Source of the DNA: Guillardia theta CCMP2712
Taxonomy: Eukaryota; Protista; Cryptophyta
Reading direction: 5' to 3'
Length of the DNA stretch: 48,352 nt
Assembly (NCBI RefSeq): GCF_000315625.1
Contig: NW_005434419.1
Span: 1-48,352 of the forward strand
In this document: positions 15,529-39,966 of the stretch, one piece after another
Layout of the letters: each line of letters begins with the position of its first letter
Position numbering within the stretch: position 1 is the stretch's first letter
Notes under the pieces: model-generated
The model's input: only the letters and a program-made list of their open reading frames with translations
Told to the model about the DNA's origin: nothing
Databases searched by the model: none
Program-made: the position numbers and the translations under genes

Positions 15529-18500
15529 GGCAGATAGGTCTCATATCCCCGTCGTAATGTTTCACTAAGGGTGGGATGGAGGTGAAGGTGCGACTGCGGT
15601 GGCAGCAGATCGAGCGATGGATCTGTTCACCAACGTCGTCGAGATCGCCAACGTCAGGCCCATCCACGGCCTCCAGCCGCTCTACCTCTCTGGTTTGTCA
15701 GCTCGAGTTCCAGCTGGGCAGTGATTGAGTCTCGTCCCAGCTCTGTTGAGGCTCGTCGACAAGATTCCGAGCAGCGGCTGGACGATGTCTAAGATGTGAG
15801 CATCTCCTCCTCCTCCTTTCCTGTCTGCTGTAGCATCCCTCCGTCCCTCCCTCCCTCCCTCCCTCCCTCCCTCCCTCCCTCCCTCCCTCCCTCCCTCCCT
15901 CCCTCCCTCCTCTCCCTCCTCTCCCTCCTTCCCCTCCCTCCTCTCCCTCCTCTCCTTCCTCTTCCTCCTTCCCTTCCCTTTCCCTTCCTCCCTCCCTCCC
16001 TTCCTCGCCCCCTCCGCCCTCCCCGTCTTCCTCCCTCTTCTCACCCTTCCCTTCGCCCGGGCTGAGGAAAACATTCTGCAGCCAAGCCCAGCAGCTCGCG
16101 CCGCTGCATAAGCCGAAGCACATCCACTGGCTGTTGCTGGGGTTGGGAGGTAGAGGGGAGGGAGAGGAAGGGAAGGCGCTTGAGATAGGAGCCGAGCTGA
16201 AGATAGAAACCCTCAGTCTCAAGGTGAGGGAGGCTGATTGCTGTCACTGTCCGCCATGTCCAGCTGAACTCCAGCAGAGCTGGAGCTTCGTGGAGTGGTC
16301 GAAGATCTACTCTGACGTCCGGAAGCTGAGAAATTCTGATGGGAAACCCAAGTACACGAACGAGATCGTCTCCTTCTGCCAGCTGTATGGGTGAGAGAAA
16401 TGCAGTCACTGATTTTCAGTTGCTGATCCTCCTCCCTGTCTTCCGTCCTCCTTCCTCCTCCTCCTCCTCCTCCTCCTGTCCTCCTCCTCCTGTCCTCCTC
16501 CTGTCCTCCGCTCCCTTCTCCACACAACTGCTCCCTCCTCCACTACCTTCTCCTCCTTCTCCTCCTCCTCCTCCACTGATACCATCACCAGGAAGCTTCT
16601 TCGTCTCTGGACGGTGGCGAACGTTCAGGTCTTGAACGCCATCTCCTTCGACAGCCCTGTGCACGTGAGCCTCTGGTCATGGTTGCGATGCTCGAACTTG
16701 CTGCAAGGATACATCGATGAGGGAACAGAGGTGAGGGAGGAGGAGGGAGGAGGAGTAGCAGCAGCAGCAGGTGGTGGTGGAGCAGCAGCAGCAGCAGCAG
16801 CAGCAAAGCATGGCGGAGGTGGTGGGGAGGGCAGGGGGCTTGGAAGGCAGAACAAGGGGCCGGTGAATGGAGGGTGGGAAGACAAAGACGTGGAGGAAGG
16901 AGGCAGGAATGGAGGCAGGAAGGGGACCGAGGAGGGGAGCACGAGCATAAACAGGAGGAAGCAGGATCATGAACTCGGTCTCACCCTCCTCTCTCTTTCC
17001 AGGCCGGGATAGTGGGGGATGTAGCCTTCCTGTTCTGCAAGTGCTACCTGCACCGCCTCATGGTCACTGACGACACTGAGTTCTACGAGCAGCAGGTCAG
17101 GACCTGGTTGCGTCTCCTATCGCTTCCTCCGCTGATCTCTGTCCCAGGTTCCCTTCCCTCTGAACCAACTGGTCGAGATGGCGCTCTTGATCAGACAGGC
17201 AAGATCCTCCTGCTCCTGCTCATGCTCCCGCTCCCGCTCCTGCTCCCGCTCCTGCTCCACCACCACCTCCCCCTCTCCAACAGACTGAAGGGGGTTGAAC
17301 TTGCAGTACGTAAACCGTCGGTTCTGGGGAGCGGACAACGTCTCCTCCTCTGCTGCTGCCCGACAGGCTGTGGCCTCTGCTGAGTCGACCAGGGACATCC
17401 GGCAACAGCAGCGGGAGGCCGCGACCATGGTGGGCAGTTCATACTGGCGTGCACAGGCCTGTCTGACTTGAAATTTCCACCCCTTCCTATGCAGCTCCTC
17501 CATCAGCTCTATGACCGGAACGCGCGAAGAGAATTTTGTCCGCTGGAGATATGGTTTGGCTCTCTCCTTCTTTCCTCCCCCCACCTTTCCTTGCCCCCAA
17601 CCCTCCATCATCGCCTCCACTTGCTCTTCTTTCGTCCCTCCCCTTCTCTACTTTCCTTCTTCCTTTCCCTTGTTTCTTGTGCCCATTGGTTCATTCCTGC
17701 TCCACTTCCTCCCCGTCCCGTTCGCCCTGCCGGAGTCTCCGGTCCCTTTATGTCTTGAAGCTATGTCATGACTTATCCCTGCAAGAAATTACTTTCCTCC
17801 TCCTCCTCCTCCTCCCTGCTCCTCCTCCTGCTCGTCCCTCCTCCTTCCTTCACTTCCTTCCTCCTACCTCCTCCTCCTCCTCCTCCTCCTCCTCCTCCTC
17901 CTCCTCCACCCATTCCCAAGCCCCCCCCCCCCCCCCTCCTTCCTCCTCCTCCCCCTCTCCCTTTCTTGCTCATCTTCCTTCCCCCAGGCTGCAGAAAGGT
18001 TTCAAGATGGACGCGTTTGGCATCGACTCCACCGCTGAGGACAGCCAGACGCTCGTCGTCCTCCGCGAGTTCCCCCACGTGATCCCGCTGAAAGAGAGGG
18101 TCCAGATCTTCCAGCGGCTGATCGAAGAGGAGAAGAAGAGCCAGCAGTGGCCGACCTCCCTTGTCAAGATCAGGAGGCAGAGGATAGTGGAGGACGGCTT
18201 CAACAAGCTCGGAGTCCTCAGGGAGGAGCTCAAGGGGGTGGTCAAAGTCCTCTTCGTCAACGAGAGCGGGCTCGACGAGTCCGGCATCGACATGGGGGGC
18301 CTGTACAAGGAGTTTCTGACCCATTTCATCGAGCGAGCCTTCCATCCTGACTACGGCCTCTTCAAGTACTCAGCTGAGAGGCAGCTCTTCCCTAACCCCC
18401 ACAGCCACATGATGGTTCACTCCCACTTGGACTACTTCGCGTTCCTGGGGAGGATGCTGGGGAAGGCCATGTACGATGGCATCCAGATGGACCTCTCGTT

Positions 18501-19266
18501 CTGCGGCTTCTTCCTCTCCAAGCTCCTGGGCAAGCACAACTACCTCGACGAGCTGCCGTCGCTCGACCCGGCCCTGCACAAGAATCTCATGTACCTCAAG
18601 AACTACGAGGGGGACGTCCGTGACCTCTCCCTCGACTTCACCGTCACCACCGACGAGATGGGAGGAGGGGAGGTGGAAGAGCTGGTCCCAGGAGGCTCCA
18701 ACATCGAGGTTACCTCCTCCAACAAGATCCAGTACATCCACCTCGTGGCCGACTATCGTCTCAACAAGCAGATCAAGCGGCAGTGCGAAGCCTTCCTGCG
18801 AGGCTTCCAGGACGTGATCCGCGTGGAGTGGATCAGGTTCTTCAACCCGGTGGAGCTGCAGGTGCTGATCAGCGGGGAAGACGACGGCGGGTTCGACGTC
18901 GAGGACCTCAAGGCTCACACGGTCTACTCTGGGGGATATACCTCCCTCGACAGCACTTGCCGGAGGTTCTGGAAGGTCGTGGCGCAGTTCTCGAGCAAGG
19001 AGAAGTCAGCTCTCCTCAAGTTCGTCACCTCCTGCCCGCGCCCTCCCCTCCTTGGCTTTGCCTCCCTCCAGCCTCCCTTCACCATCCATCGCGTTCACTC
19101 CGACAAGGGCTTCTGGGACTACATGACGGGCAAGTCGGAGGATCGCCTTCCGACCTCAAGCACCTGCATGAACCTCCTGAAGCTCCCTCCTTACCCGAGC
19201 TCCTCCAACCTCCGCGACAAGCTCCTCTATGCCATCACGGCTAACGCCGGGTTCGAACTCTCGTGA
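14116..19266 (+). CDS. HECT E3 ubiquitin ligase, UBE3B/UBE3C (plant UPL6/7)-like, with N-terminal IQ motif; multi-exon
   Basis: N-terminal RQAFLARTQAQRAARQ...AAVSIQAWLRGRR (IQ); internal LLHQLYDRNARREFCP; terminal exon ~17989-19266 is a full HECT domain (ESGIDMGGLYKEFL, FLGRMLGKAMYDG, LLKFVTSCPRPPLLGF, RLPTSSTCMNLLKLPPY, GFELS*) with the catalytic Cys. Confidence 0.95.
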
Positions 19267-23266: not shown

Positions 23267-26200
23267 ATGAGGGCACATTTCTTATACATGCAGGATTCTC
23301 GTTTGCATCCATGCAATGAACATGGTCTCGCCCAACAAATCCCCAATGCGAGTAATGGACCATTGCTCGCAAACGGAGACGGAGCCAGCGCAGGCCCTCC
23401 CGGACTCTCGTTTGCGCACGAATCCCGCGAATGGCTGAGCTTTATTCGTACAAGCTTGTTGCAGACATTCTACGGGATTTACTTCCGATCCACAACAAGG
23501 GCAGGCAACTTCCTTGGGAAGAACTCACTAATGATATTCCTGGGATCTTCGGTGGATCCTTGGATACGATACCAAGTGCTGCCGGTCCCGAGCTTGCTCA
23601 TGAGCTCTCTCTGCTTCATAGCTTCTGTGTGCTTTCTGCTGGCCATGGTGGGCAACACGTTGTATATGATGTATCATCTTTCTGAGGTGGGTAAGACTAA
23701 CCACAGACATTTCCGTCTGTCCATTGAGGAATCTTTGAAGTATGGTACTTCCGGCGTTATCGATGGAGTGACCTTCGGTCTTGTCCATGATTCTTGTGTC
23801 GTCTCCTTGCAAGGAGCCTTCAGGAAAGCTGCGGGATCCAGCATCTACCTCTCGTACCCCGAGCCCGTGGAAGCAAACGGGTTGTATATTGTTCACAACG
23901 GAACTTATCCTACTAAGTTCTTGCTGGAAGCATCTGAGGACTTGCAGACTTGGAGTGTCTACGGCGCTTCGTCCAAGCGATTCACTTGCACTGGTTTCTT
24001 CCTGCTTGACTGGGTGTATCGTCCAGACATCGCGCATGACTACACGAGGGAGTCTTCATTTGCTTCCGATGTTTGCCTGCAGCTGAGGCAGGAGGGGGAC
24101 GACTCGAACTGTGACGGTCTGATCTTCATAAGCAACGGATGGCGATGGACGATGCTCTTTCCAATAGTTGGGAACATGCTGATCATAGGGGCGCTGATAT
24201 GTTGGATTTACGTCTCAGTCAAAACAGAGTATGCCAGCGTAATGAAGTATCCCCTGTTGATCTTTTTGATCTTGTGTGCTGCGGAGTCTCTGTCTTTTGC
24301 TATCATCTGGTGTACATTGCCGACCCTGTCAGGTGTGACTCAGCCAGAGAACAGTATGTATGCATGGGTTCTCTTTGTTTTGTATCTTCTCTTAGCTGGG
24401 GCAGTCAACGTGATGTATGAAAAGTATTTCTTGTCTATTTGTATAATATTCGAAATTCTCTTCTTCATCAGCGGTTATGTCAACCTTTGGTATGTGTACG
24501 GCAACTCGGTGCCCGTTTCAGAGTATTTCTTGGCATCTGTTTATTTTGTCCTCATCGCGGGATTTTCTGCAGTCATCCATGCGAAAGGCGCCAAGAGATT
24601 GCATTTTGCAAACAAGAGGTTCGAAGGCTTTCGAACCAGAATGAGGCAGATGGTGGTTGACACCTTAGGGGATACAAACGCGAGCTCAGTGTTGGACTCA
24701 ATAGATAAAAAACTTGAGTTGCTGAGGTCCGGGAGGAGAAACACCGTAATTCAAGATTCTCCGTCCGCCATGGACCTTGGTTCAATGCGCTTCGATCTCG
24801 CAGCAACCATGGCCGACTTTGCCTCTGATGCCGTCGTATCTCAGGGGCCAAAGGACTCTCATGTCGCTTGCCTTGACCAGTTGTTCATCCAAGCAGAGAT
24901 GCTGAAGCCTTTCCTCAACGTGAAGGTGTTGGAGCTCGCGATCAGGAACGAGGGCATGTTGAAGTCAACGAGCGGGGAGTGGCTCTCTGCTCAAGAGCTC
25001 CAGAGTGACCCAGAAATCTGTTCACGGGTGAAATGGACGGAAATCAAGAGCGTTCCGCGCATTGTGAGCAAGAGCTTTTGTTCTTTGGAGGGGGATTGTT
25101 CTCGGCTGACAGACATCTGTCGGGAGAGGATAGTCTTTGAAGACTTGAAAGCAATCCGCAAGTGCCTGCTGCATATCATACAAGATCCGCAGATTGTTGT
25201 GATGTCCGGCAAAAACTCGATGAAAGATTGCCTCACGTCTACTCACGAGTATCATGTCGGCATTGTACTGTCAGTTCGCCTCGCCATGCCGCAGACTCAC
25301 AGTCTTGGAATTTCGCGCCATGCGTGTGAGGTTCAACTCATGCTCCGGAAGTTTGCAGAGTCGCAAGATTCGACAAGTCATGAAGACTACGTCGCATACA
25401 GGTATGAGCAATGGCATGCTCGCACTTGTTCTATGTTTGACCTTGATGTGCAGGAATGCTTTTGACAGTCAGAAAACACGGGTGTTCTTTGACTTCAAGA
25501 AGACTCTGTCCTATTGTGGCAAAGCGCACAAGTATGCAAGCAGAGGCCCCACGTCTTCAGTCGCGAGTGAAACTCGAAACGCCGATGTTTCCCACCCGTT
25601 GCTGGAGGAAAGCGAACACTGGGTTGAGAGGTTCTGTAGATCGCGGGCCTGCCATGCAGGCAATGTGGTCAGCTCCCAGCTGTCTGTCATTCACGAAGCA
25701 ATAGCGCGAGCAAGCTACAGCAGCTGCTTCTTCACCTCAACTCCCATCGCTGCTGCTCTGTGCAAGCCCGTGTTCCAGATGCTGTTCTGCTTGATAGGTC
25801 TGGTGTACTTCATTCAGGTCGGCTTCATCGTTTACGGCTACATGCACTCGGCACTCTTCGAGTACAAGGACTTCGTCTTCACAGTGAAGCAATTTGACGG
25901 AGCCCCTCTCAACGAGGGGAACTTCACCCTCTCCTCGTTCGGGCTGCTGAGGAGGGGATGCAGGGTAGCGTCCGCATCTCGGATCGTGCAGACAAGTCAA
26001 GTCTCTGCAGCGATCTCCATGAAGTCGTCGATGGTTGCCGACGGGTGGTACTACGAGCTGCCAGCAGGGACCAAGTCCTCTGATATCCCGATCTCCTTCC
26101 GCTTGGAAGGATCGCAGGACGGGAGGAGCTGGAGCCTTGCTGGAGCCTCGTCCTTCATCACAGGGGAGGCTGGCTGGGTTGCTCTGTCCGCAAGGCCCAA

Positions 26201-28236
26201 TGGGAACCTGAGGAACAAGTGGGGATATCAGTATAACTACATCCCGCCGACCATATGGCTTGTCTCGTGGCTGTTCTCCTACTTCCTGAGCGGGGTCTTG
26301 TACTGGATTGCAGCGTTATCGTCCGTCCTCCATCTGTCTGTGTACGTCAAGCACATCGGAGGAATGGGATACCTCTTCGACGTCATCCTCACCTTGCTCC
26401 CCATCCCATGGCTGGTGGAGCAAGGGAACTCGGACGCAGCCATAGATTTCTTCTTGAGGGGAACGTGCTGGATCATGATCGGGTACTTCATCAGGTTTGC
26501 AGAGGCCTACTGGGTCATCGTGAGTGCGTTCGTCGGGATGTACTTCATGGGGGTCGAAATGATCATCATGTTCCTCATCCACGAGGACTCTCGGAACTTC
26601 TGGTTCCAGTTCCTAACCTCCTCCTTCATACAGTTCGGATCAGTGATGTTCCTCTTCGGAGTCTTGTCCATCGGTGCTCGCTGGCGCTTCCTGCTGAAGG
26701 CTGAAGAGTTGATCAGAGGGGACAGAGACAGCTACATGCACTGCTGGGAGAGGCTGTACGAGGACGAGTCCAACGTCGTCCACATGGACAACCTGCAAGC
26801 CATTGCCGACGCCGTCTCCTCCAAGGAGCGGATCCGCCAGCGGGTCCCTGTGGACATCGAGCAAGCTTGGAAGGACGTCGGCTTCCACGTCCCCTGCCGG
26901 AGGAACGACGTCATCACTCGCATCCATTCCTTGCTACATCCTGCTAGGCCTCAGTTCGAGGACGTGGAGTGTTTGGATCAGCTGCTCGCGCAAGCGGAGG
27001 GTCTCGACTCGTCGATGCGATTCCTTTGCCAGCGGTGGGCGGCAGCAACCAACGGATGCTTCCCGATGCAAGGTCCCCCACTCTCCTGCTCGCTCCTGCT
27101 CGCTCCTGCTCGCTCCTGCTCGCTCCTGCTCGCTCCTGCTCGCTCCTGCTCGCTCCTGCTCGCTCCTGCTCGCTCCTGCTCGCTCCTGCTCGCTCCTGCT
27201 CGCTCCTGCTCGCTCCTGCTCGCTCCTGCTCGCTCCTGCTCCCTCCTGCTCCCTCCTGCTCCCTCCTGGTCCTTCCCTCCCTCTCCTCCCGTCTCACCGT
27301 CCTCCTGTCCCCCACTCTTCCCCATCGACCGTCACCCGTGCATGACCAGTCGCCTGCAGGCAAGACATTCATGCGGTGGACGGAAGTGCTCGAGAAGAGG
27401 ATGACGGATCAAGTCCAGTGGGCCAAGATCAAGAGGCCGCTGAGGATAATCGAGAAGACCCTGCGCTCCTACCGCCACGACCCGAGCTACCTCTGCGACA
27501 TCTGCAGGCAGTGTATCGTTTTCGAGACCATGGAAGACCTTGTGAGATGCGTTCAACAAGTGATCTCAGACGAGGTCAGTCTCTTGCTCTTGCTCTTGCT
27601 CTTGCTCTTGCTCTCCGTCTGTCTCCACCTCCACCTCCACCTCCACCACCTCCACCTCTACCTCTTTCCTATCTCGTTCCCTTTCTCTTCCTCTTCCTCT
27701 ATCCGCCTCCAGCTCTGTCCCCCGCTCAACCTGCATGCAGGACGTTGTGGTGGAGAGGATCAAGAACAGGTTCGTCGCTCTCAATCGTGGATCGAAGCAT
27801 ACCCTTCAGTGAGTTTGCTGTCCCTCCCGCTGCTCCGCTTCCCTTTCCTCTGCTCATCACTTCCTTTCTCCTCCCTCCTCCTTCTTGAACTCGCTCCTTG
27901 CGATTCTCACACCCTCTCTGTGTTCTCCTCTCCCTCTCCCTCTCCCTCTCCCTCTCCCTCTCCTGCTCCCCCCTCCCTGCATCCGACATCTCCGCACCTC
28001 CTCCTCTTCCCGCTCTGACCGATCCTCCTTGCAGGAAGGAGACATACAACTCCCTGCACAGCACCGGCTACAGAGACGTCATGGTCAACATCCGGGTCGT
28101 CTCCGACCGAGCGAAGCAGCTGGGGCTGTCCTGGCACATTTGCGAGCTGCAGCTCCTGCTGCTGGACTATGCCAAGATCAAGAGCGAGCTGGGGCACTCG
28201 CGGTACATCCAGTGGAGGAATACGAGGGGGGAGTGA
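23267..28236 (+). CDS. ~1,400-aa membrane protein with two tandem modules [TM - discoidin/F5-8C-like loop - 5 TM - RelA/SpoT-like nucleotidyltransferase]; exons 23267-25401, 25454-27072, 27360-27574, 27741-27769 (or -27808), 28035-28236; start uncertain
   Basis: All four introns are GT-AG and keep the frame (4200 or 4239 nt CDS). The modules share PTKFLLEASEDLQTW..GASS/PISFRLEGSQDGRSW..GASS, CLDQL..QAE, W..IK...RI..K, L.DICR..IVF, CE[VL]QL and H..Y...RN. Module 2 carries KNR...GYRDVMVN...ICELQL, matching RelA/SpoT synthetase-like motifs. Confidence 0.8.
27083..27270. repeat. 10-bp minisatellite (CTCGCTCCTG)n inside intron 27073-27359
   Basis: Visible directly; it explains the spurious LLLAPARSCS repeats in the ORF track. 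Confidence 0.95.
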
Positions 28237-28992
28237 TGGCAGGGCACTTGTATCATAACTGTGTACATATGTACTCTTATTCTTTCCTTGCATGGCAGCG
28301 CCGTGGGGGCGGTGAGGTATACGATGTGAAGGTGAAGTAAAGGAGGAATGGTAGAGATCAAATGAATGGTTTCAAGGCGTGCACGTTGGTTGTTTCTTGC
28401 TCTGATCTTCTCCTGCCTGCTCCTCCGTGCTCTCCTCTCCTGCTATCTCCTTGCTTCTTCGTTGTTCCAGTCATCGTCTCGCCCTCCTCCTCCTCCTCCC
28501 CCCCCCCCCACTTCCCCCCTCCTTCCTCCCCAGCCCATATTCCCGGGGCTCCGTCTTTTCTCTGCCCGACCTGCGGTAAAGCCACAAACCTGAAATTCCC
28601 GCCAAAGCAGTCGCCGCATGGCGGAGGCGGCGAAGGCGGGAGGGGAGCGATGAGGAGAGAGCGAGTGTAGAGTGGCAGGGGGACGGAGGAGAGGGAGACG
28701 GGGAAAGGACGAGAGGACGAGAGGAGGAGAGGAGGAGAGGTAGAGAGGTGAAGAGGTGAAGAGGGGAAGAGGTGAAGAGGAGAGGAGAGAGAAGAGGAGA
28801 GCGGGAGACAGGAATGGGGGAGATGGGGAGACAGGAAGGGAGGGCGATGGAGGAGGAGAGAAGTAGGGGTAGGAGGAAGGGTGTGGTTTTCTGGAGCCTG
28901 ATGAAACCTATTCTCAGCTGCAAACTTTTAGATACGAGGAAGGGCCAGGAGGGCATCAGACTAACAAGATGAAGAGATGAAGAGATGAAGAG

Positions 28993-30267: not shown

Positions 30268-32296
30268 TCATCTGCACAGGTCAATCCAGGCAACGTGCTG
30301 GTTCCTCTCCTCGTCCTTCATCCTCAGCAGCCGACCTCTCTGCTCCCTGCACTCACTCATGATGCTGTCGAGAGTTCGGAGAAGTTCCTCCCTCTCCCTG
30401 TCGTCCCTTCTCAGACGCTCCTCCTCCTCCTTCATCCTCCTCCTCAACCGAGCCAACCGCTCGTCGAGATCCTCCACCTTGTCTCGGACAGGAGCTAGCT
30501 CCAGCTCTACAGCAGGGCCCTGGTGTTGGGAGATCGCTGTCGAGGAGCAGAAGTCAGTGAGCGGGAGTATGCGCAGAGGGGTCCTACCTGCTGCTTTGGT
30601 GGGTAGAGCAGGGAGGGAGGAGGACGGGAACTGGTCCTGCCTTGCTGCTGGCATGCCTGCCGTGGGCCCTGCTCCCTGCAACCCGTTGGCGGGAGGCTTC
30701 GGAGGAGATGATGACAGGAGGAGGTCGAAGGAGGAAGGATCTGCCCTGCTTCCTGCGTGCGATCCTTCCAGCAGCTCTCCCATCAGGTCCGGCTGTCCTG
30801 CTCCACCTGGGGCCGCGAGCTTCCCCTGCTCCTCCTTGACAAGATCCTGGAAAGGGTCCCAGGCTTTCTGCTCCTTCACCTGTACAGGGGGGGACGCAAG
30901 GAGTTGAAACCTCCCGTTCGGCGCTGCGGCAGTTCTTCCGTCCTGCTCCTTCTCGTCCTTCTCGTCCTGTTTCTCCTTCACCTGCTCCTTTGTCTTTTCC
31001 TTGTCCTGCTCGTTCGCCTGCTCCTTGTCCTGTGGCTGCATCTTCCATGCATCTTGTTCGCCCGAGATGATTGCGTCGTCCTGAATTACAGGCGAAAGAT
31101 GCGACGGGGCGGCAGGAGCAGCGAAGGATGGAGAGGAGGAAGGGATGGAAGTGGAAGACGGAGGAGGAGAGGTAGGAAGAGGAGGCTGGGTCCGGGGGGG
31201 GGAAGCAGCTACAGGAGGAGGAACAGGAGGAGGAGCAGGAGGGGGGGAGTTGGAGTGGGTGGCGCCTGGGAAGGAGAACAGATCCTCTCCCTGTCCCTCC
31301 TGATTCGTCTCGAAGCTCTCGAGGAGGTCACGCTGAGCAGCAATAGGATGCGGAGGCCCTGCAGCTGGGAAACTTTCCGTGCTGCCCCCCAGCAGGTCCA
31401 AAAGTTCCCCCGCCTCTGCCCTTGGTGCCTTCCCCCCTGGGAGAGGAGGAGAGGTCGCTGGCTTCGGAGGAGGAGGAGGGCTCCTCTTCGGCGGGGTAGT
31501 CGGAGGAGGCTTCTTGGGAGGAGGAGAGCTTGCGGCGAGCTCGGAGGGTGGCTGAGCCTCTGGGGAGGAAAGGAATTTCTGGTCAACGGAAGGACGAGAG
31601 AAGGTTGACGGAGATGAAGAGGAGGCAGCAGGGGAGGAGGACAGGGGAGGAGGCGAGGATGGAACAGGAGGGGGAGAGGAGAGGGCAGGAGGGAGCTCGA
31701 AGCCGAACATGCCATCCGTTGGAGGAGCAGAACGATGCTGTTCGAACGCAGGAGGAGGAGGGAACTGGGAGAAGAGGTCCCCTCCCTGGGAGGAGGATAC
31801 CGCTGAGCCCTCTCCCTGCTCGGGGAGGAAGGAGGCTGACGGCTCTTGGGAGGAGGAAGGGAGCTGTTGCGATGAGCTGCTCCCGAACGGATCCCAAACT
31901 TCCTCCCCCTTCGCATCCTTCTTGGCTGGAGAGAGCCCGCCCGCCGTGCTGGACATCGGCTGCTGAAAGTCAGCGGGTGGGAAGGAGGAGGAGAAGGAGG
32001 TGACTTGGTCTTCCTGTACCAGGGAGGCGAAAGGGTCCTGCAGATTGCTGTTCGGGGAGGCAGGAGCGAAGGAGGATGAAGGGTCCTCGATGTCGGGAGC
32101 GGCGAAGGAAGTCCACTGGGAAGAGAGCTTGCTGCCTCCTGCGAAGTGATCGTCTCCCTCCTGCGCAGAGCTGTTGGTGGCGTCCTCGAACCCCGAGGGG
32201 GAGGGCAGGACGTGAGGAGGAGAGGAGGGCGCGATCTTGGTGTGCTCCTCCACCAATAGCGCGTCGAAGGCGCCGAGGAGAGGGGAGGGTGAAACA

Positions 32297-32334
<38 letters not shown>

Positions 32335-34938
32335 GTCATGCAGTTTCCTTTGCTCATGGCCAGTAGCCCCTCCCCCTCTGTCCTTGCTATCGCTGTCAGC
32401 CATGGAGCCGAGCAGCTCGTGGGGACTGGGGAGAGGAGCAACGATCGATCCCCCGTGATGATCGTCGTGGACAGGCTTGTGCGGTGAGGAGGAGGAGGAG
32501 GAGGAGGAGACATCGAGGTCAGCAGGGGGGAGGACGAGGCTCGCCGGAAGCTCCTCCCCCTTCCTCCTGCTGATGATAAGATGCATGGCGACGGCGAACT
32601 CCCGCGCATCCAGCATCCCGTCCTTGGTCAGGTCCGAGAGGTCCCAGATCCTCCTGAGCTCCTGCACGGGGAGGCCGGACTCAGCAAGGATGGGACGCGC
32701 CTGCTGCCCGGAGAGGTGGAGGGAAGAGCCGGCGAGGGCCCGAAACCTCCTCGTGTAGTTCGCGAGCTCCATCTGAGACAGCCCGATCGTCCGCATCAGC
32801 CGAGAGAACCGAGGAGACACGGCTCCTTCTCCTGCTCCTTCTCCTGCTCCTGCTCCTGCTTCAGCGCTGCTGCGGATCCCATCCTGGCTGGACCTCTGGC
32901 TTGCTTCACCATGGCTGCTGTCTCCTACTTTGTTCGGCACGTCCTTTCTGTCCTGAAAGGAGGAAGCAACAACACTGGCAGAGCGAACAGCTTCATCGAG
33001 CTCAGTGGATGCACGAGGAGCAGGAACGGTTGCAGCGAGCGCGGGGGAGCTCCCCTCCTTCACACCCGGTACCTCGAGGTGGAGCAGTTGCTGGGGGAGG
33101 GAGGTGGGAAGGACGCCATCTTTCTTCCGGATCTCGATCAGGTGCATGGCGACGGCGAACTCCCGCGCATCCAGCATCCCGTCCTTGGTCAGGTCCGAGA
33201 GGTCCCAGATCCTCCTGAGCTCCTGCACGGGGAGGCCGGACTCAGCAAGGATGGGACGCGCCTGCTGCCCGGAGATGAAGCCGTCATGATCTGAGTCGTG
33301 CTGATGGAAGAGCGCAATGTAGGAGGCGACTTGCGGCGGGTGGAGCGCGGGGACCAGCTGAGGGTGAGGAGGGGGCTGGCTGACGACCACAGAGGAGGAG
33401 CTGCTGCCGGCAGAGGAGGTGGGCTCTAGAGCGGGGGAGATGGCAGGGAGCGAGGAAGAGGAGGAGGGAGGAAAGTTCGGGGTGGATACCATGGCGGGGC
33501 TGGGGGGAGCTGGTCTGCGAGAGAAGTGAGAGCGAGACCAGGCACGAGGAAGGGAGGAGGGAAGCGGCTTCTCCCTCCTCGCCATCCCCATCAGATGCTG
33601 CGCTATGGCGAACTCATGCGCGTCGAGCTTCCCGTCCTTGGACTCGTCCGCCAGGTCCCACACAAGCCTGAGGGTCGAAGTGGAGAGCCCTGACTGCATC
33701 AGGAGCTGCTTCGCCTGCCTGCCATCCAGGTAGCCTGTCCTCCCTTCGTCGATGGCCTCGAACACCTTGCAGTGCTCTTCGTACTCTGCCATGGTGAGCT
33801 CGACGTCTGCCCCACCTTCCTCGCGCTCCGCTGCCATGCTCTTGGGCGATGGGAGAGGATTATGCAGCGGGAGGACTTCGCCCATGACGTAGTCCGAGCT
33901 CGACGTGGTGCGAGAGGTCCTGTCCTGCTCCTCTGAGCCCCGCAGGAACTGAGAGGACGTGAAGGTCGCGGCGTGAGGAGCAAAAGTGGAGCTGAAGGTG
34001 TTCGTGCTTCCTGCTCCTGCCATGACGGTGGCGGGGGGAGCTGGGGGCTGGGCTGAGCTGCCGGCAGGTTGGTTGGCGAAGGCGGGGAAGGGGAAGTCAC
34101 CCTGGAAGCTGGAGCAGACGCTCATGGTGGGCTCGTACTGGTTCTGAGCAAGAGAGATGAGCCTGAGGGCGAGGAAGAAGCCGTCCTGCAGGAGGTCGAT
34201 CAGCAGGGGGAGGCAGAGGGGAGGGAGGGGAGGGAGGGAGGGAGGGAGGGAGGGAGGGGGAGGGGGGGGNNNNNNNNNNNNNNNNNNNNNNNNNNNNNNN
34301 NNNNNNNNNNNNNNNNNNNNNNNNNNNNNNNNNNNNNNNNNNNNNNNNNNNNNNNNNNNNNNNNNNNNNGATTATGCTTGATTATGCGGGAAAAAACTAC
34401 GGATCAAGGAGCAGGAGGGAAACGATCTTCGCTGCTTGGTTTCCCGGAGCTCGCAGGAGGAGGTGCAAGGATATCAGGGCCCGTGGCCGCCACTTTCTTC
34501 AAGAAATCCGGTCTTCCCACACTGACTCTCAAGAAGGTAGTTTGCTCCTCCTCCTCCTCCTCCTCCTCTCCCTTCTATTATTGATGCTCAACCTGACTTG
34601 TTGTATGTAGATCTGGGACATTGTTGATACAGGGGGGGGGGGAATCACCAAGTCGATGCTTCCCATCCGCGCTGTATCAACAATGTCCCAGATCTACATA
34701 CAACAAGTCAGGTTGAGCATCAATAATAGAAGGGAGAGGAGGAGGAGGAGGAGGAGGAGCAAACTACCTTCTTGAGAGTCAGTGTGGGAAGACCGGATTT
34801 CTTGAAGAAAGTGGCGGCCACGGGCCCTGATATCCTTGCACCTCCTCCTGCGAGCTCCTGGAACCGAGCAGCGAAGATCGTTTCCTCCTGCTCCTTGATC
34901 CGTAGCTTTTCCCGCATGGAGGTAAACAGCCCGCTCAT
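30268..34938 (-). CDS. Eps15/Ede1/intersectin-like endocytic adaptor with four EH domains, DPF motifs, a Pro-rich region and a C-terminal coiled coil
   Basis: EH1 is split over exons (ISGPVAATFFKKSGLPTLTLKK|IWDIVDTARMGSIDL|DGFFLALRLISLAQN). EH2-4 lie in the large ORF (SGLSTSTLRLVWDLADESKDGKLDAHEFAIA; twice SGLPVQELRRIWDLSDLTKDGMLDAREFAVAMHLI). QDPF/WDPF motifs are present. Confidence 0.88.
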
Positions 34939-36299
34939 GTTGCGTGCTCCTATTCCTGCTACGGCATGTCAGAGGGCCGTGGCAGGAATAGGAGCAGAAG
35001 GAGCAGAAGGAGCAGGAGCACAGCCCTCTGACTCCTTCCTCTGCCTGCTTCATTGCCCTTGTGCTAGTTGCTCCTCCTCCTCCTCCTCCTCCTCCTCCTT
35101 CCTCCACCTACTCCAACCTCACCTCCTCCTCCTCGTCATCGTCTTCGGCATCGTCAAGTGTAAGGTCTACTTGCATTCACATGCCATTCTCCCGCACAAC
35201 CTACTTTTCCTGATCCATCTCGCCTGCTCGGCTACAACCTCCACCTTTCCCGCTGATCTTTCATCCTCCTTTCTCATTCTCCTTTCGTATCCTCATGCTC
35301 TCCCTTAAATGCGCTCGTCCCTATAAAAAGCAAACAAGGAGCAGAAATGCATGAGGGAGCAGAGAGCAGGATGAGCAGGAACAGGAAGAAGAGGAGAGAG
35401 AGGAGGGGAGGGAGAAGGGAGGGGAGGGGAGGAGTTGAGAGGAGAGGAGGGGAGAGGAGATGAAGNNNNNNNNNNNNNNNNNNNNNNNNNNNNNNNNNNN
35501 NNNNNNNNNNNNNNNNNNNNNNNNNNNNNNNNNNNNNNNNNNNNNNNNNNNNNNNNNNNNNNNNNNNNNNNNNNNNNNNNNNNNNNNNNNNNNNNNNNNN
35601 NNNNNNNNNNNNNNNNNNNNNNNNNNNNNNNNNNNNNNNNNNNNNNNNNNNNNNNNNNNNNNNNNNNNNNNNNNNNNNNNNNNNNNNNNNNNNNNNNNNN
35701 NNNNNNNNNNNNNNNNNNNNNNNNNNNNNNNNNNNNNNNNNNNNNNNNNNNNNNNNNNNNNNNNNNNNNNNNNNNNNNNNNNNNNNNNNNNNNNNNNNNN
35801 NNNNNNNNNNNNNNNNNNNNNNNNNNNNNNNNNNNNNNNNNNNNNNNNNNNNNNNNNNNNNNNNNNNNNNNNNNNNNNNNNNNNNNNNNNNNNNNNNNNN
35901 NNNNNNNNNNNNNNNNNNNNNNNNNNNNNNNNNNNNNNNNNNNNNNNNNNNNNNNNNNNNNNNNNNNNNNNNNNNNNNNNNNNNNNNNNNNNNNNNNNNN
36001 NNNNNGTACCGGTAGTTTTTCGCTTTGATTATAGTACATCGAGGGGGTAGGGTCCAAGGACAGGGTGAGAGGGAGGGAGGGAGGGAGGGAGGGGAGGGGA
36101 GGGGAGGGGAGGGGAGGGGATGGAGGAGGATGAGGATGAGGATTAGGATGAGGAGGATGTGGTGGTACTTAGTCACACTTTCTTCCTGAAATTGTCTTGA
36201 AGATTGTTGTTCTTCTCTATGAAACATTTCCCTCTTGTCCGTTCGTGTGAGTATTGGTACATTCATTCTTTTCACTTGTTCACACCCATCACCGTCTCA

Positions 36300-36586: not shown

Positions 36587-39172
36587 TGTCCTGATTGCAC
36601 AGCACGAGTATTGGAGGTCTCAATGGATCGATGCCGATATGCAGCAGCAGCTTTGAAGGGGAGGTGGGATAGATGGCATGCTCGACTCATACCTTGAGCT
36701 CTCGAGCGCTGAAGAACCTGGGCAGCTTCTGCCTGTACCTCGTCGAGGAGACTTTTCTTGCCTCCACCTCACCTGCCTCCCACCTGCTTCAAGTCTCATC
36801 GCACCCCTCCTCCTCTCCTCTGATCGCACCCCTCCTCCTCTCCTCTGATCGAACCCCTCGTCCTCTCCTCTCATCCCTCGTCCTCTCCTCTCATCGCACC
36901 CCTCGTCCTCTCCTCTCATCGCACCTCTCGTGCTCGCAGGAGCTCTTCGGGTAGAACCAGATCTTGTCCACAGGGTTCTTGTCCTTGGCCCCGTAGTGCA
37001 CATGCCACTTTACGATCTGGCAGCATATCAGCCAATGACTGAGGGCGGGAAAGGACGCGCGTACACGAAGATCGGACGAGGAAAAGTCGTCCGGCTTGCC
37101 CTCCATGTGAGGACGAGGAGGAGGAGGAGTAGACCGCTTGTTCCGAGCTGCTGGGCACCTCTCGAGGTATGCGATCTGTGGGGTTGGGGTGAGGATGGAG
37201 TGGGTAGAAGACAGCAGAGAGGAAGAGGAGGGGAAGGAGGAGAGAGGAGAAGGGGAGTGAGGAGAGGACAGGAGAGGAGCGGTAGAGAGGCGAAAAGCAG
37301 CAGCTGCTTCCATCGCACCTGAGAGCACATGACCTCTTCGTCGCTCTTCGCGTCTCCTCCAACCTGCGAGAGAGGATTCTCCTAGTATTGAGCAGAGTGA
37401 GAGAGGTAGGAGGTTGGGAGGGAAGGGAGGGAAGTGGCGAGAAAAATGGTGGTNNNNNNNNNNNNNNNNNNNNNNNNNNNNNNNNNNNNNNNNNNNNNNN
37501 NNNNNNNNNNNNNNNNNNNNNNNNNNNNNNNNNNNNNNNNNNNNNNNNNNNNNNNNNNNNNNNNNNNNNNNNNNNNNNNNNNNNNNNNNNNNNNNNNNNN
37601 NNNNNNNNNNNNNNNNNNNNNNNNNNNNNNNNNNNNNNNNNNNNNNNNNNNNNNNNNNNNNNNNNNNNNNNNNNNNNNNNNNNNNNNNNNNNNNNNNNNN
37701 NNNNNNNNNNNNNNNNNNNNNNNNNNNNNNNNNNNNNNNNNNNNNNNNNNNNNNNNNNNNNNNNNNNNNNNNNNNNNNNNNNNNNNNNNNNNNNNNNNNN
37801 NNNNNNNNNNNNNNNNNNNNNNNNNNNNNNNNNNNNNNNNNNNNNNNNNNNNNNNNNNNNNNNNNNNNNNNNNNNNNNNNNNNNNNNNNNNNNNNNNNNN
37901 NNNNNNNNNNNNNNNNNNNNNNNNNNNNNNNNNNNNNNNNNNNNNNNNNNNNNNNNNNNNNNNNNNNNNNNNNNNNNNNNNNNNNNNNNNTCCCGTCCTC
38001 AATGCAGATCGACCCCGCGTATCGATACTGGACCGCAACCCATCCATCAGCTGGGCTGTCAGGCAGGGAGCAAAGCACCAGGTCCCTCCTGCACACTCGA
38101 TCCAACAGCCTCCTTGCGCGCTGAACTCCTGGGAGATGGGGGGTCAGGGGTCAACACCGGCAGCAGGTCGTCCTCGTCCTCGTCCTCGTCTTCCTCCTCG
38201 TCCTCTTCCTCGTCCTCGTCTTCCTCCTCGTCCTCGTCTTCCTCCTCGTCCTCTTCCTCTTCCTCGTCTTCCTCCTAGTCCTAGTCCTCGTCCCTTCTGC
38301 TCCTGCTCCTGGTCCTCGTTCTCGTCCTCACCTGGACTTTGCTTCTGACTGTGCCTGATCAGATCAATCACGCCGTCGTCCATGAAAGTGAAGGCCTGGA
38401 GGAGGGAAGGGCTGAGAAGGAGGAGGAGCTGAAGGCGAGGGAGGGAGTTGTTGAGCTGGTATGTGACATCGGCGATCGGGCAAGTTGCCCAATGAAGGGA
38501 AGGGAAGGAGAGGAGCAGCAAGACCGAGGTTGTCTCAGCCATTCGAAAGCAGAAAGAGTTGTTGCCAGCACCACACGAGATCTCATTCGTTGTTGTCGCA
38601 GCATGACAACGATGACAAGGATTGACATGATGACAAGGATTGACATGATGACAAGGATTGACATGACCGTCGACACAACAAAGTTTGTCATCACAACTCA
38701 GCACATCAATATCTACCATTACAACTGTACACATGAACATTGGTCATCACAACCATCTGCCTCCTCCTCCTCCTCCTCCTCCTCCCTTCCTCCTCCTCCT
38801 CCTCCTCCAACATCATAACCTGAGGATCGAGCGCAGCCTCGCACATGGTGCAGTGGCGCAACAAGCATCCATCACCATCGAAGACAGCGATCTTGACATC
38901 GTCGTGCCCTGTCAAACTTGCGATGAGATGATGGCGAGGAGGTGAGAGGAGACCAGATATGAGGACGTCGAAGATCATCTCTTCAATCGCCAACACCTGG
39001 GAGGGATGAAGTCAACAGGATGAGTTTCTGCAGTCATGGGCAACTTACCCTACGGTTCTGGTAGACCTTGTCATGCATCAGACATCTCTCGCTGAAGATT
39101 TCCATCGCCTCACAGACCTTGAGGGTACCCGTGAATCATCGGAGTTGGAACTCACAATTCCTTTGAGGTTGT

Positions 39173-39257
<85 letters not shown>

Positions 39258-39966
39258 GTATGCGATCCTCGAATATGATAATGACGATGATGTAATGATT
39301 ATGATGGTGACAGCGATGATAATGATGGTGGGGAAGAGGTTGGGGAGCAGGAAGAGGAGACGTTTGAGAACGACGACGGTGGTGAAGATAAGTTGGCAGG
39401 AAGCGGGGGACATACCTGCTTCTCTGGAAAGCATATCGCTTTCCTGCTCGAGCTCTCTGCCGAGTGTATTCTGCATCGCTCGCTTCACAGCAGGGCAAGC
39501 AGGGAGGAGGAGATGAACTACTTGCAAACCCTGGCAGAGTCTGTGAACCTCTCGAACGTAACCTGGACAACACTTGTCAAGAATCTTCCTGTTTCCTCCT
39601 CCTCCTCCTCCTCCTCCTCCTCCTCCCCCACCTCCTCCCCCTTGCTCCCCCTGCTCCTCCGCCTCCCCCTTGACACTTCTCCCCCTGCTCCTCCGATTCA
39701 TCTCCTCCTGCTCCCCTCCTTTACTCCTCCGGCTTATTCTCTTACTCCTGCTCTCTTCCTCCCTCACCACTTTGCTCCCCAAGGTNNNNNNNNNNNNNNN
39801 NNNNNNNNNNNNNNNNNNNNNNNNNNNNNNNNNNNNNNNNNNNNNNNNNNNNNNNNNNNNNNNNNNNNNNNNNNNNNNNNNNNNNNNNNNNNNNNNNNNN
39901 NNNNNNNNNNNNNNNNNNNNNNNNNNNNNNNNNNNNNNNNNNNNNNNNNNNNNNNNNNNNNNNNNN

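Follow-up and report, generated by a model that had tools for sequence, protein, structure and literature searches.

A predicted receptor-type membrane enzyme of the RSH synthetase superfamily in the cryptophyte Guillardia theta

We found that a spliced gene of Guillardia theta CCMP2712 encodes two membrane modules, each followed by a soluble domain with the fold of the RSH (RelA/SpoT-type) synthetases. The gene lies within a 48,352-nt stretch of DNA (contig NW_005434419.1), referred to here as the window. On balance, and with considerable room for doubt, we think that its product is a receptor-type membrane enzyme of the RSH synthetase superfamily, with an extracytosolic sensor, a cytosolic second RSH-like domain (domain 2), and an altered first one (domain 1).

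In the mechanism that we envision, a glycan or other ligand would bind the ectodomains and control activity in the cytosol through the helix of transmembrane segment 6 (TM6) and the linker. Domain 2 would use ATP to pyrophosphorylate a purine nucleotide at its 3'-OH, giving a (p)ppApp- or (p)ppGpp-type product. In its motifs 1 and 2, the domain appears nearer to Tas1 than to RelP and RelQ. Domain 1 would be an altered partner site, probably with a regulatory role.

RSH-type synthetases are bacterial stress, toxin, and anti-phage enzymes, and are also found as plastid enzymes in plants and algae. We know of no ppGpp synthetase in animal cells. ppGpp itself has been measured in animal cells, which have the hydrolase Mesh1 (PMC7666150). 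If the function proposed here is correct, then the large, expressed family to which the gene belongs, with its receptor-like membrane modules and an RSH synthetase domain that looks intact, would be the first candidate for receptor-controlled alarmone-type signaling, or for nucleotide-based defense, in a eukaryotic cytosol. Full-text searches of the literature, on alarmones or RelA/SpoT in Guillardia and cryptophytes and on transmembrane alarmone synthetases in protists, turned up no description of the family. New here are the RNA-confirmed two-module gene, the recurrent degenerate first domain, the Tas1-like motifs, and the evidence for a discoidin-like ectodomain. Domain 2, with ~200 residues and a clear catalytic Asp and Glu, is a directly testable object.

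Fold and active-site residues of the soluble domains

The RSH-type synthetase fold and membership in the superfamily are secure, based on a family profile, two structure models, and a transitive link through Pfam. The profile (A1) was built from an alignment of 42 copies of the domain from the G. theta genome. Compared to the PDB, it matched RelP/YwaC (6fgk) across the whole catalytic domain (E 4.4e-4) and Tas1 (6ox6; E 5.8e-4). The strongest local similarity in sequence was likewise to Tas1 (K-S-x-x-R-A-x-x-K ... Y-x-G-D ... D-x-x-R-x-x-I; 22 bits over 42 residues). An AlphaFold model of the domain from a paralogue had a pLDDT of 91.6. A structure search with this model returned 33 PDB chains at E<=1e-3, and all were RSH synthetases (Tas1, RelP, RelQ, an exported SAS, and CapRel); FaRel2 and RelSeq fell just above the cut-off. 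Tas1 was the top Foldseek match for both structure models, with scores that tied with those of RelP and RelQ. The Pfam link comes from one family member, P0191, that matched the family profile at E 1e-48 and passed the threshold for PF04607 (27.8 bits; cut-off 27). Four other family members had sub-threshold scores for PF04607.

An earlier prediction, made from the sequence of the window (the original prediction), had assigned the soluble domains to the RelA/SpoT type, and the profile, the two models, and P0191 all bear this out. It had also noted the absence of HD and TGS domains and of a plastid leader. There was no Pfam match to HD (PF13328), TGS, or ACT domains in the window pieces or the paralogue, and the gene model has no N-terminal hydrophobic leader. 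Searches of the PDB with single sequences gave chance matches only (ORC1, designed proteins, and RRF), and we discarded these.

The residues that bind substrate and metal are well defined in SaRelP. Lys80, Ser84, Lys88, and Arg91 are ligands of the ATP phosphates, Asp107 and Glu174 coordinate Mg2+, His190 touches the ribose, and Tyr151 of the G-loop is involved in binding the acceptor nucleotide (PMC5794853). Alignment with RelP maps Lys80/Ser84/Lys88/Arg91 to family positions K65/R69/K73/R76, and Asp107/Glu174/His190/Tyr151 to D87/E160/H177/Y135.

Domain 2 has the family-conserved residue at 23 of 23 positions, including K1276, R1280, K1284, R1287, D1298, R1301, Y1358, E1383, and H1400, and every motif string quoted in the original prediction was found in module 2. 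Three ligands of the ATP phosphates (K1276, K1284, and R1287) are kept, and Arg1280 occupies the position of the Ser, as in Tas1. Two departures from RelP and RelQ are shared with Tas1: the change from Ser to Arg in motif 1, and DxxR in place of DxxGxR. The Tas1-like motifs 1 and 2 are a lead that may point to an adenine nucleotide as the acceptor.

Domain 1 retains K594, R598, K602, D616, R619, E688, and H705. The Arg that contacts the ATP phosphates is replaced by Cys605, RIKNR by SGKNS, and GYRD by EYHV; that is, the G, R, and D of the last motif are lost. The Asp/Glu pair for Mg2+ is present in both domains (D616 and E688 in domain 1, D1298 and E1383 in domain 2) and is 99-100% conserved among 181 domains of the family. 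The proposal of two enzymatic domains therefore needs revision: the two share the fold, but domain 1 is degenerate (Arg to Cys, GYRD lost). Judging from these residues, the protein probably has one active and one altered site rather than two equal enzymes.

Membrane modules and ectodomains

Each half of the protein consists of TM1, a beta-sandwich loop of 140-165 residues, five more TM helices, a linker, and the soluble domain. Hydropathy indicates 6 + 6 hydrophobic helices, with TM10 weakly hydrophobic. The AlphaFold model of module 1 contains TM1, the beta-sandwich, five TM helices, a disordered stretch of ~40 residues, and the RSH fold, and TM6 extends as a long helix. The order of 6TM-domain-6TM-domain given in the original prediction is supported by both. 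The two modules are also homologous, as proposed: the family profile gives 183-187 bits for both soluble domains, and the two loops match each other weakly (E 0.004). The loops had been put at ~140 residues, which is correct for module 2 (139) but not for module 1 (~165).

The soluble domains are predicted to be cytosolic, with the large loops outside or in a lumen, because of the distribution of Lys and Arg and because each large loop has one N-x-S/T sequon (N211 and N868). Lys and Arg are found on the loops between TM2 and TM3 and between TM4 and TM5, and make up 8 of the 26 residues after TM6; there are none on the loops between TM3 and TM4 or between TM5 and TM6. By the positive-inside rule, the N-terminus is predicted to be cytosolic as well. 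This topology agrees with the original prediction, in which both soluble domains share the side of the N-terminus and are cytosolic if the N-terminus is.

For the TM bundle there is no convincing relative among known structures, only a weak similarity to 7-TM proteins (TMEM45A, Ste2, and rhodopsins). We considered a voltage-gated or TRP-like 6-TM channel and dropped this candidate: the loops between helices are very short, leaving no room for a pore loop. A search of the G. theta genome with the sequence of the TM module found only 3 places. Modules of the family were gathered by means of the soluble domain because the TM module is too divergent for sequence searches.

Evidence that is weak to moderate points to loops that are discoidin/CBM32-like (F5/8 type C). 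Language-model features in a protein atlas label the loop F5/8 type C (0.94). A profile made from 42 loop sequences matched two modules of the GH92 mannosidase 7nsn (E 3.6e-5), with the shared pattern DP..W.L.GS.DG..W. One of the 42 loops in the family matched PF00754 (E 0.006).

A cryptophyte family and its possible output

The gene is not a singleton: G. theta has about 50 such paralogous genes, this one included, and relatives occur in other cryptophytes. We found at least 86 copies of the domain in the genome of strain CCMP2712. The 86 matches correspond to ~30 pairs on the same strand ~2.1 kb apart (two-module genes) and ~20 single copies (single-module genes). Many family members are in intronless open reading frames (ORFs) of 1,000-1,500 codons, for example L009:1571-6046, encoding 1,492 amino acids. 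Tandem arrays are present at C30:477-530 kb (four loci) and C1:834-843 kb (two near-identical loci), and an inverted pair at C206:46.7-57 kb (all G000 contigs). These arrangements suggest birth-and-death evolution.

Among 1.84 billion proteins, the A1 profile matched 5,942 representative proteins at E<=1e-3, of which 460 reached E<=1e-30; because it is so abundant, the family likely matters for the biology of marine protists. The relatives in cryptophytes, where the original prediction had suggested searching, come from Hanusia phi (P0030, the nearest to the window gene), Hemiselmis, and Rhodomonas salina, and there are others in MMETSP transcriptomes. Among the best 150 matches, 76 of the 79 proteins of at least 500 amino acids have TM helices. 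Forty modules have the same pattern: TM1, a gap of 144-256 amino acids, and four or five TM helices. Pairwise identity averages 39% for the RSH-like domain, 19% for the loop, and 13% for TM2-6. The gene belongs to a large, fast-diversifying repertoire of putative receptors in cryptophytes. Elsewhere, the same fold is joined to TPR and ankyrin repeats, and weak sequence matches carry leucine-rich repeats (LRRs). Some relatives have been named automatically in UniRef as 'RelA/SpoT domain-containing protein'. A search for homologues with exon 1 found one relative only, within the length window of that search.

Weaker kin are found in metagenome-assembled genomes (MAGs) of Myxococcaceae and Planctomycetota. 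The nearest named relative among bacteria, from a Myxococcaceae MAG, is 211 amino acids long (L053:1573-2208; E 5.6e-14 to the family profile). A 73-codon ORF with no Pfam match lies 13 nt downstream (L053:2221-2442), a layout like that of toxin-antitoxin pairs.

The asymmetry between the two domains recurs in the family. We compared first and second domains in 24 two-domain proteins, whose counts represent kin and not independent events. R76 is retained in 29% of first domains and 100% of second domains, R122 in 50% and 96%, Y135 in 42% and 92%, D137 in 46% and 88%, and Q162 in 42% and 96%. First domains keep K65, K73, D87, R90, and E160 in 21 of the 24. The family hidden Markov model (HMM) scored the second domain above the first in 18 of 22 two-module proteins. 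In second domains and in single domains, the metal-binding Asp and Glu, the Lys and Arg ligands of phosphate, and the G-loop Tyr are retained in 88-100% of cases.

According to a tree of the domains, decay of the first domain arose in several lineages. One clade has eight members, all first domains, and there are at least three more pairs of first domains on long branches, including that of the window gene and its Hanusia relative. This repeated decay has convergent parallels in adenylyl cyclases and in those ABC proteins that have a degenerate site. The tree also contains several proteins whose own two domains are sisters (recent or homogenized). In P0009, P0002, P0003 (the protein from L009:1571-6046), P0004, and P0155, the first and second domains are mutual nearest relatives, and those of P0009 are almost identical. 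These proteins, unlike the window gene, have probably undergone a recent internal duplication or gene conversion.

Several known systems resemble the G. theta protein in part. RelP and RelQ (SAS2 and SAS1; PDB 6fgk, 6ewz, and 5dec) are soluble bacterial homotetramers, whereas the G. theta domain is eukaryotic, sits behind a 6-TM receptor module, and occurs twice per chain. It also differs from them in motif 1, where Ser is replaced by Arg and the first Arg is missing, and in motif 2, which reads DxxR. Tas1, the type VI secreted (p)ppApp synthetase of Pseudomonas aeruginosa (PDB 6ox6), is similar by its rank in Foldseek and in local sequence. However, Tas1 is secreted as a bacterial toxin domain and has an immunity protein, and we saw no secretion or immunity context for the G. 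theta gene. The toxSAS enzymes CapRel and FaRel2 (tRNA pyrophosphokinases; PDB 7ztb and 8pu4) are bacterial cytosolic sensors with no membrane module.

The original prediction likened the protein to mammalian membrane adenylyl cyclases (6TM-C1-6TM-C2). The likeness holds for the layout: there are two 6-TM blocks, each followed by a cytosolic domain of catalytic type. As in the cyclases, most two-module members of the family have one degenerate domain. However, the G. theta protein has no class III cyclase domain (no match to PF00211 in the window pieces or the paralogue), and its TM blocks hold a large beta-sandwich loop. The likeness is one of design and not of descent. The plastid RSH proteins of plants and algae (RSH1-3 and CRSH) and the classical RSH genes of G. 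theta belong to the same synthetase superfamily, and the latter are in the same genome. A six-frame search with PF04607 found only two such classical loci (HD_4 + PF04607), on contigs C47 and C24. In contrast to these genes, with HD_4 and a domain that scores with PF04607, the receptor family has TM modules and neither HD nor TGS. RelA_SpoT has also been reported as an effector domain of fungal NLR proteins (10.1101/2022.03.16.484565). There, as proposed here, it is a eukaryotic, non-plastid, RSH-type output end of a variable sensor. The fungal proteins are soluble STAND/NLR proteins, whereas the sensor in G. theta is a multi-pass membrane module with an ectodomain.

Several results weigh against a receptor-controlled synthetase. 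PF04607 did not match any exon translation or the intronless paralogue at E<=1, and scans of the window protein pieces with Pfam, NCBIfam, and PADLOC gave nothing significant. The two loops of the window gene itself have no match in Pfam, and the matches behind the ectodomain assignment are weak to moderate. The change from Ser to Arg and the DxxR motif are departures from the known enzymes, so the chemistry could differ from (p)ppGpp synthesis. HD_4 matches in the genome are only at the two classical RSH genes, and we found no stand-alone alarmone hydrolase. A complex prediction for two copies of the paralogue domain gave a score of 0.00, which speaks neither for nor against pairing.

If the protein is a receptor-controlled synthetase, a larger and more tentative picture can be drawn, one that we put forward as a possibility and hold to be doubtful as a whole. 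There may be a cytosolic, non-plastid alarmone-type pathway in cryptophytes, and perhaps in other marine protists, with ~50 receptor-synthetases at the cell surface. The discoidin-like ectodomains would sense glycans, viruses, or other cells, the (p)ppApp- or (p)ppGpp-like output would act as a messenger or as a signal for growth arrest or suicide, and the degenerate first domain would regulate the active second one, as with C1 and C2.

The main rival is that the family is a repertoire of receptors for defense or self/non-self recognition with a toxic output instead of a messenger. Once the receptor recognizes its target, the RSH-like domain would arrest growth or kill the cell, by either depletion of ATP through (p)ppApp or pyrophosphorylation of tRNA 3' ends. 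Both modes are known among toxSAS enzymes: Tas1 and FaRel deplete ATP through (p)ppApp, and CapRel and FaRel2 pyrophosphorylate the 3' ends of tRNA (PMC11782079, PMC9712102). The large lineage-specific expansion, with its tandem and inverted arrays, fits this notion, as does the much faster divergence of the sensor parts (19% and 13% identity) than of the effector domain (39%). So do the Tas1-like motifs 1 and 2, the place of Tas1 at the top of both Foldseek searches, with CapRel and FaRel2 among the structural matches, the joining of this fold to TPR, ankyrin, and LRR repeats in other proteins together with its use as a fungal NLR effector (10.1101/2022.03.16.484565), and the small ORF next to the Myxococcaceae relative. 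However, we saw neither an immunity or antitoxin partner nor a link to infection, and the gene appears consistently in transcriptomes from several studies. In addition, structural scores do not set Tas1 apart from RelP and RelQ, and the PADLOC matches are only at E 0.004-0.009. We regard a defense function as unlikely.

It is also conceivable that the RSH-like domains are pseudoenzymes with a role limited to binding ATP or another nucleotide and regulating the 6-TM bundles; the bundles would then be the working part, as a transporter, channel, or adhesion receptor. Conserved residues are lost in domain 1 and in the first domains of most relatives, the window pieces have no direct match in Pfam, and the TM bundle bears a weak likeness to 7-TM proteins. 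However, conservation of 88-100% for the active-site residues in domain 2 and in second and single domains is the pattern of purifying selection expected for a working site, and the TM parts are the least conserved (13% identity), unusual for the core of a transporter. Alternatively, the fold might carry out other nucleotidyltransferase chemistry, such as nucleotidylation of a protein, lipid, or small molecule. The changes in motifs 1 and 2 and the lack of RT after ExQ would allow for this, and relatives of RSH enzymes accept unexpected substrates such as tRNA. However, all significant matches to structures and profiles were to RSH pyrophosphokinases, with no other nucleotidyltransferase family in the top 50 rows. 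Retention of the active-site set in second and single domains makes both of these explanations less likely; we consider pseudoenzymes improbable and a different chemistry very improbable.

Gene structure and neighborhood

The gene has five exons that join to a 4,239-nt coding sequence for 1,412 amino acids with a single terminal stop (Table 1), in agreement with the single spliced protein of ~1,400 residues that had been predicted. The model was drawn by eye, and all of its introns are canonical GT..AG. Two long ORFs on the + strand, 23267-25465 and 25254-27404, are in different frames, and a pair of shorter ORFs lies downstream. Intron 1 was placed because the frame shift between the two long ORFs demands it.

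Introns 2-4 are confirmed by transcript contigs. Contigs from three separate studies carry 27360-27574, 27741-27808, and 28035 onward. The longest, at 4,623 nt, is long enough for the whole coding sequence and untranslated regions (UTRs). Upstream, the contigs have a loose end before 27358 that is identical to the end of exon 2. The joint from 27808 to 28035 was found in three sets of contigs and in one raw read. Raw RNA-seq reads also have a poly(A) end near 28381; that is, the 3' UTR reaches ~28381. Sampled words from the gene were present in sequencing runs at a fraction of 0.85, equal to the share of exons in the stretch (4239/4970).

Table 1. Features of the two-module gene in the window
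Feature	Position	Strand	Remarks
Exon 1	23267..25401	+	Predicted cytosolic N-terminus (residues 1-109), module 1, RSH-like domain 1; ORF and splice donor
TM1	23594..23650	+	Residues 110-128; hydropathy 2.5, helix in AlphaFold model
Ectodomain 1	23651..24151	+	Residues 129-295; beta-sandwich, F5/8-type-C/CBM32-like; 4 Cys, one N-x-T sequon
TM2-TM6	24152..24583	+	Residues 296-439; hydropathy, five model helices, Lys/Arg confined to cytosolic loops
RSH-synthetase-like domain 1, degenerate	24866..25399	+	Residues 534-711
Intron 1	25402..25453	+	52 nt, GT..AG; based on reading frame
Exon 2	25454..27072	+	Inter-module linker, TM7, ectodomain 2, TM8-12, linker, start of domain 2
TM7	25779-25835	+	Within exon 2
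Ectodomain 2	25836-26252	+	Within exon 2
TM8-12	26253-26678	+	Within exon 2
RSH-synthetase-like domain 2	from 26967 (exon 2) into exons 3-5	+
Intron 2	27073..27359	+	287 nt; includes 10-nt tandem repeat, 27083-27241
Exon 3	27360..27574	+	Domain 2 K1276, R1280, K1284, R1287, D1298, R1301; transcript contigs, HMM alignment
Intron 3	27575..27740	+	166 nt; missing from contigs of three studies
Exon 4	27741..27808	+	RIKNR motif and 12-residue insert
Intron 4	27809..28034	+	226 nt, GT..AG
Exon 5, coding part	28035..28236	+	GYRD (Y1358), E1383, H1400, Y1403; stop 28234-28236

The insert encoded by exon 4 lies between RIKNR and GYRD and has no counterpart in the family consensus. We considered an alternative in-frame donor at 27769/27770 that drops the insert and gives a length closer to the consensus. 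The contigs use 27808/27809. The predicted protein P0030 from Hanusia phi stops, at residues ~1270-1296, by running on into sequence exactly where the window gene has the boundary between exon 3 and intron 3. The position of intron 3 is probably common to the two genes, and the database model of P0030 is probably truncated.

The repeat in intron 2 consists of ~16 head-to-tail copies of the unit CTCGCTCCTG. Introns 3 and 4 are CT-rich and microsatellite-like. Read in the wrong frame, the repeats in introns 2-4 give long ORFs rich in Leu, Pro, and Ser.

The domain profile search of the genome found no other family member within the window. The window contains runs of N (assembly gaps, 1,720 bases) at 960-1059, 2317-2578, 34270-34369, 35466-36005, 37454-37990, and 39786-39966, and bins of low GC in the composition profile are due to these runs. 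Upstream of the two-module gene, an ORF at 17536-19263 (+) encodes a HECT-domain ubiquitin ligase (E 2.5e-98). Downstream, the gene at 30271-34125 (-) encodes an EH-domain/EF-hand protein that is Eps15-like (E 3.6e-54). Both neighbors are ordinary eukaryotic genes that are unrelated to the two-module gene.

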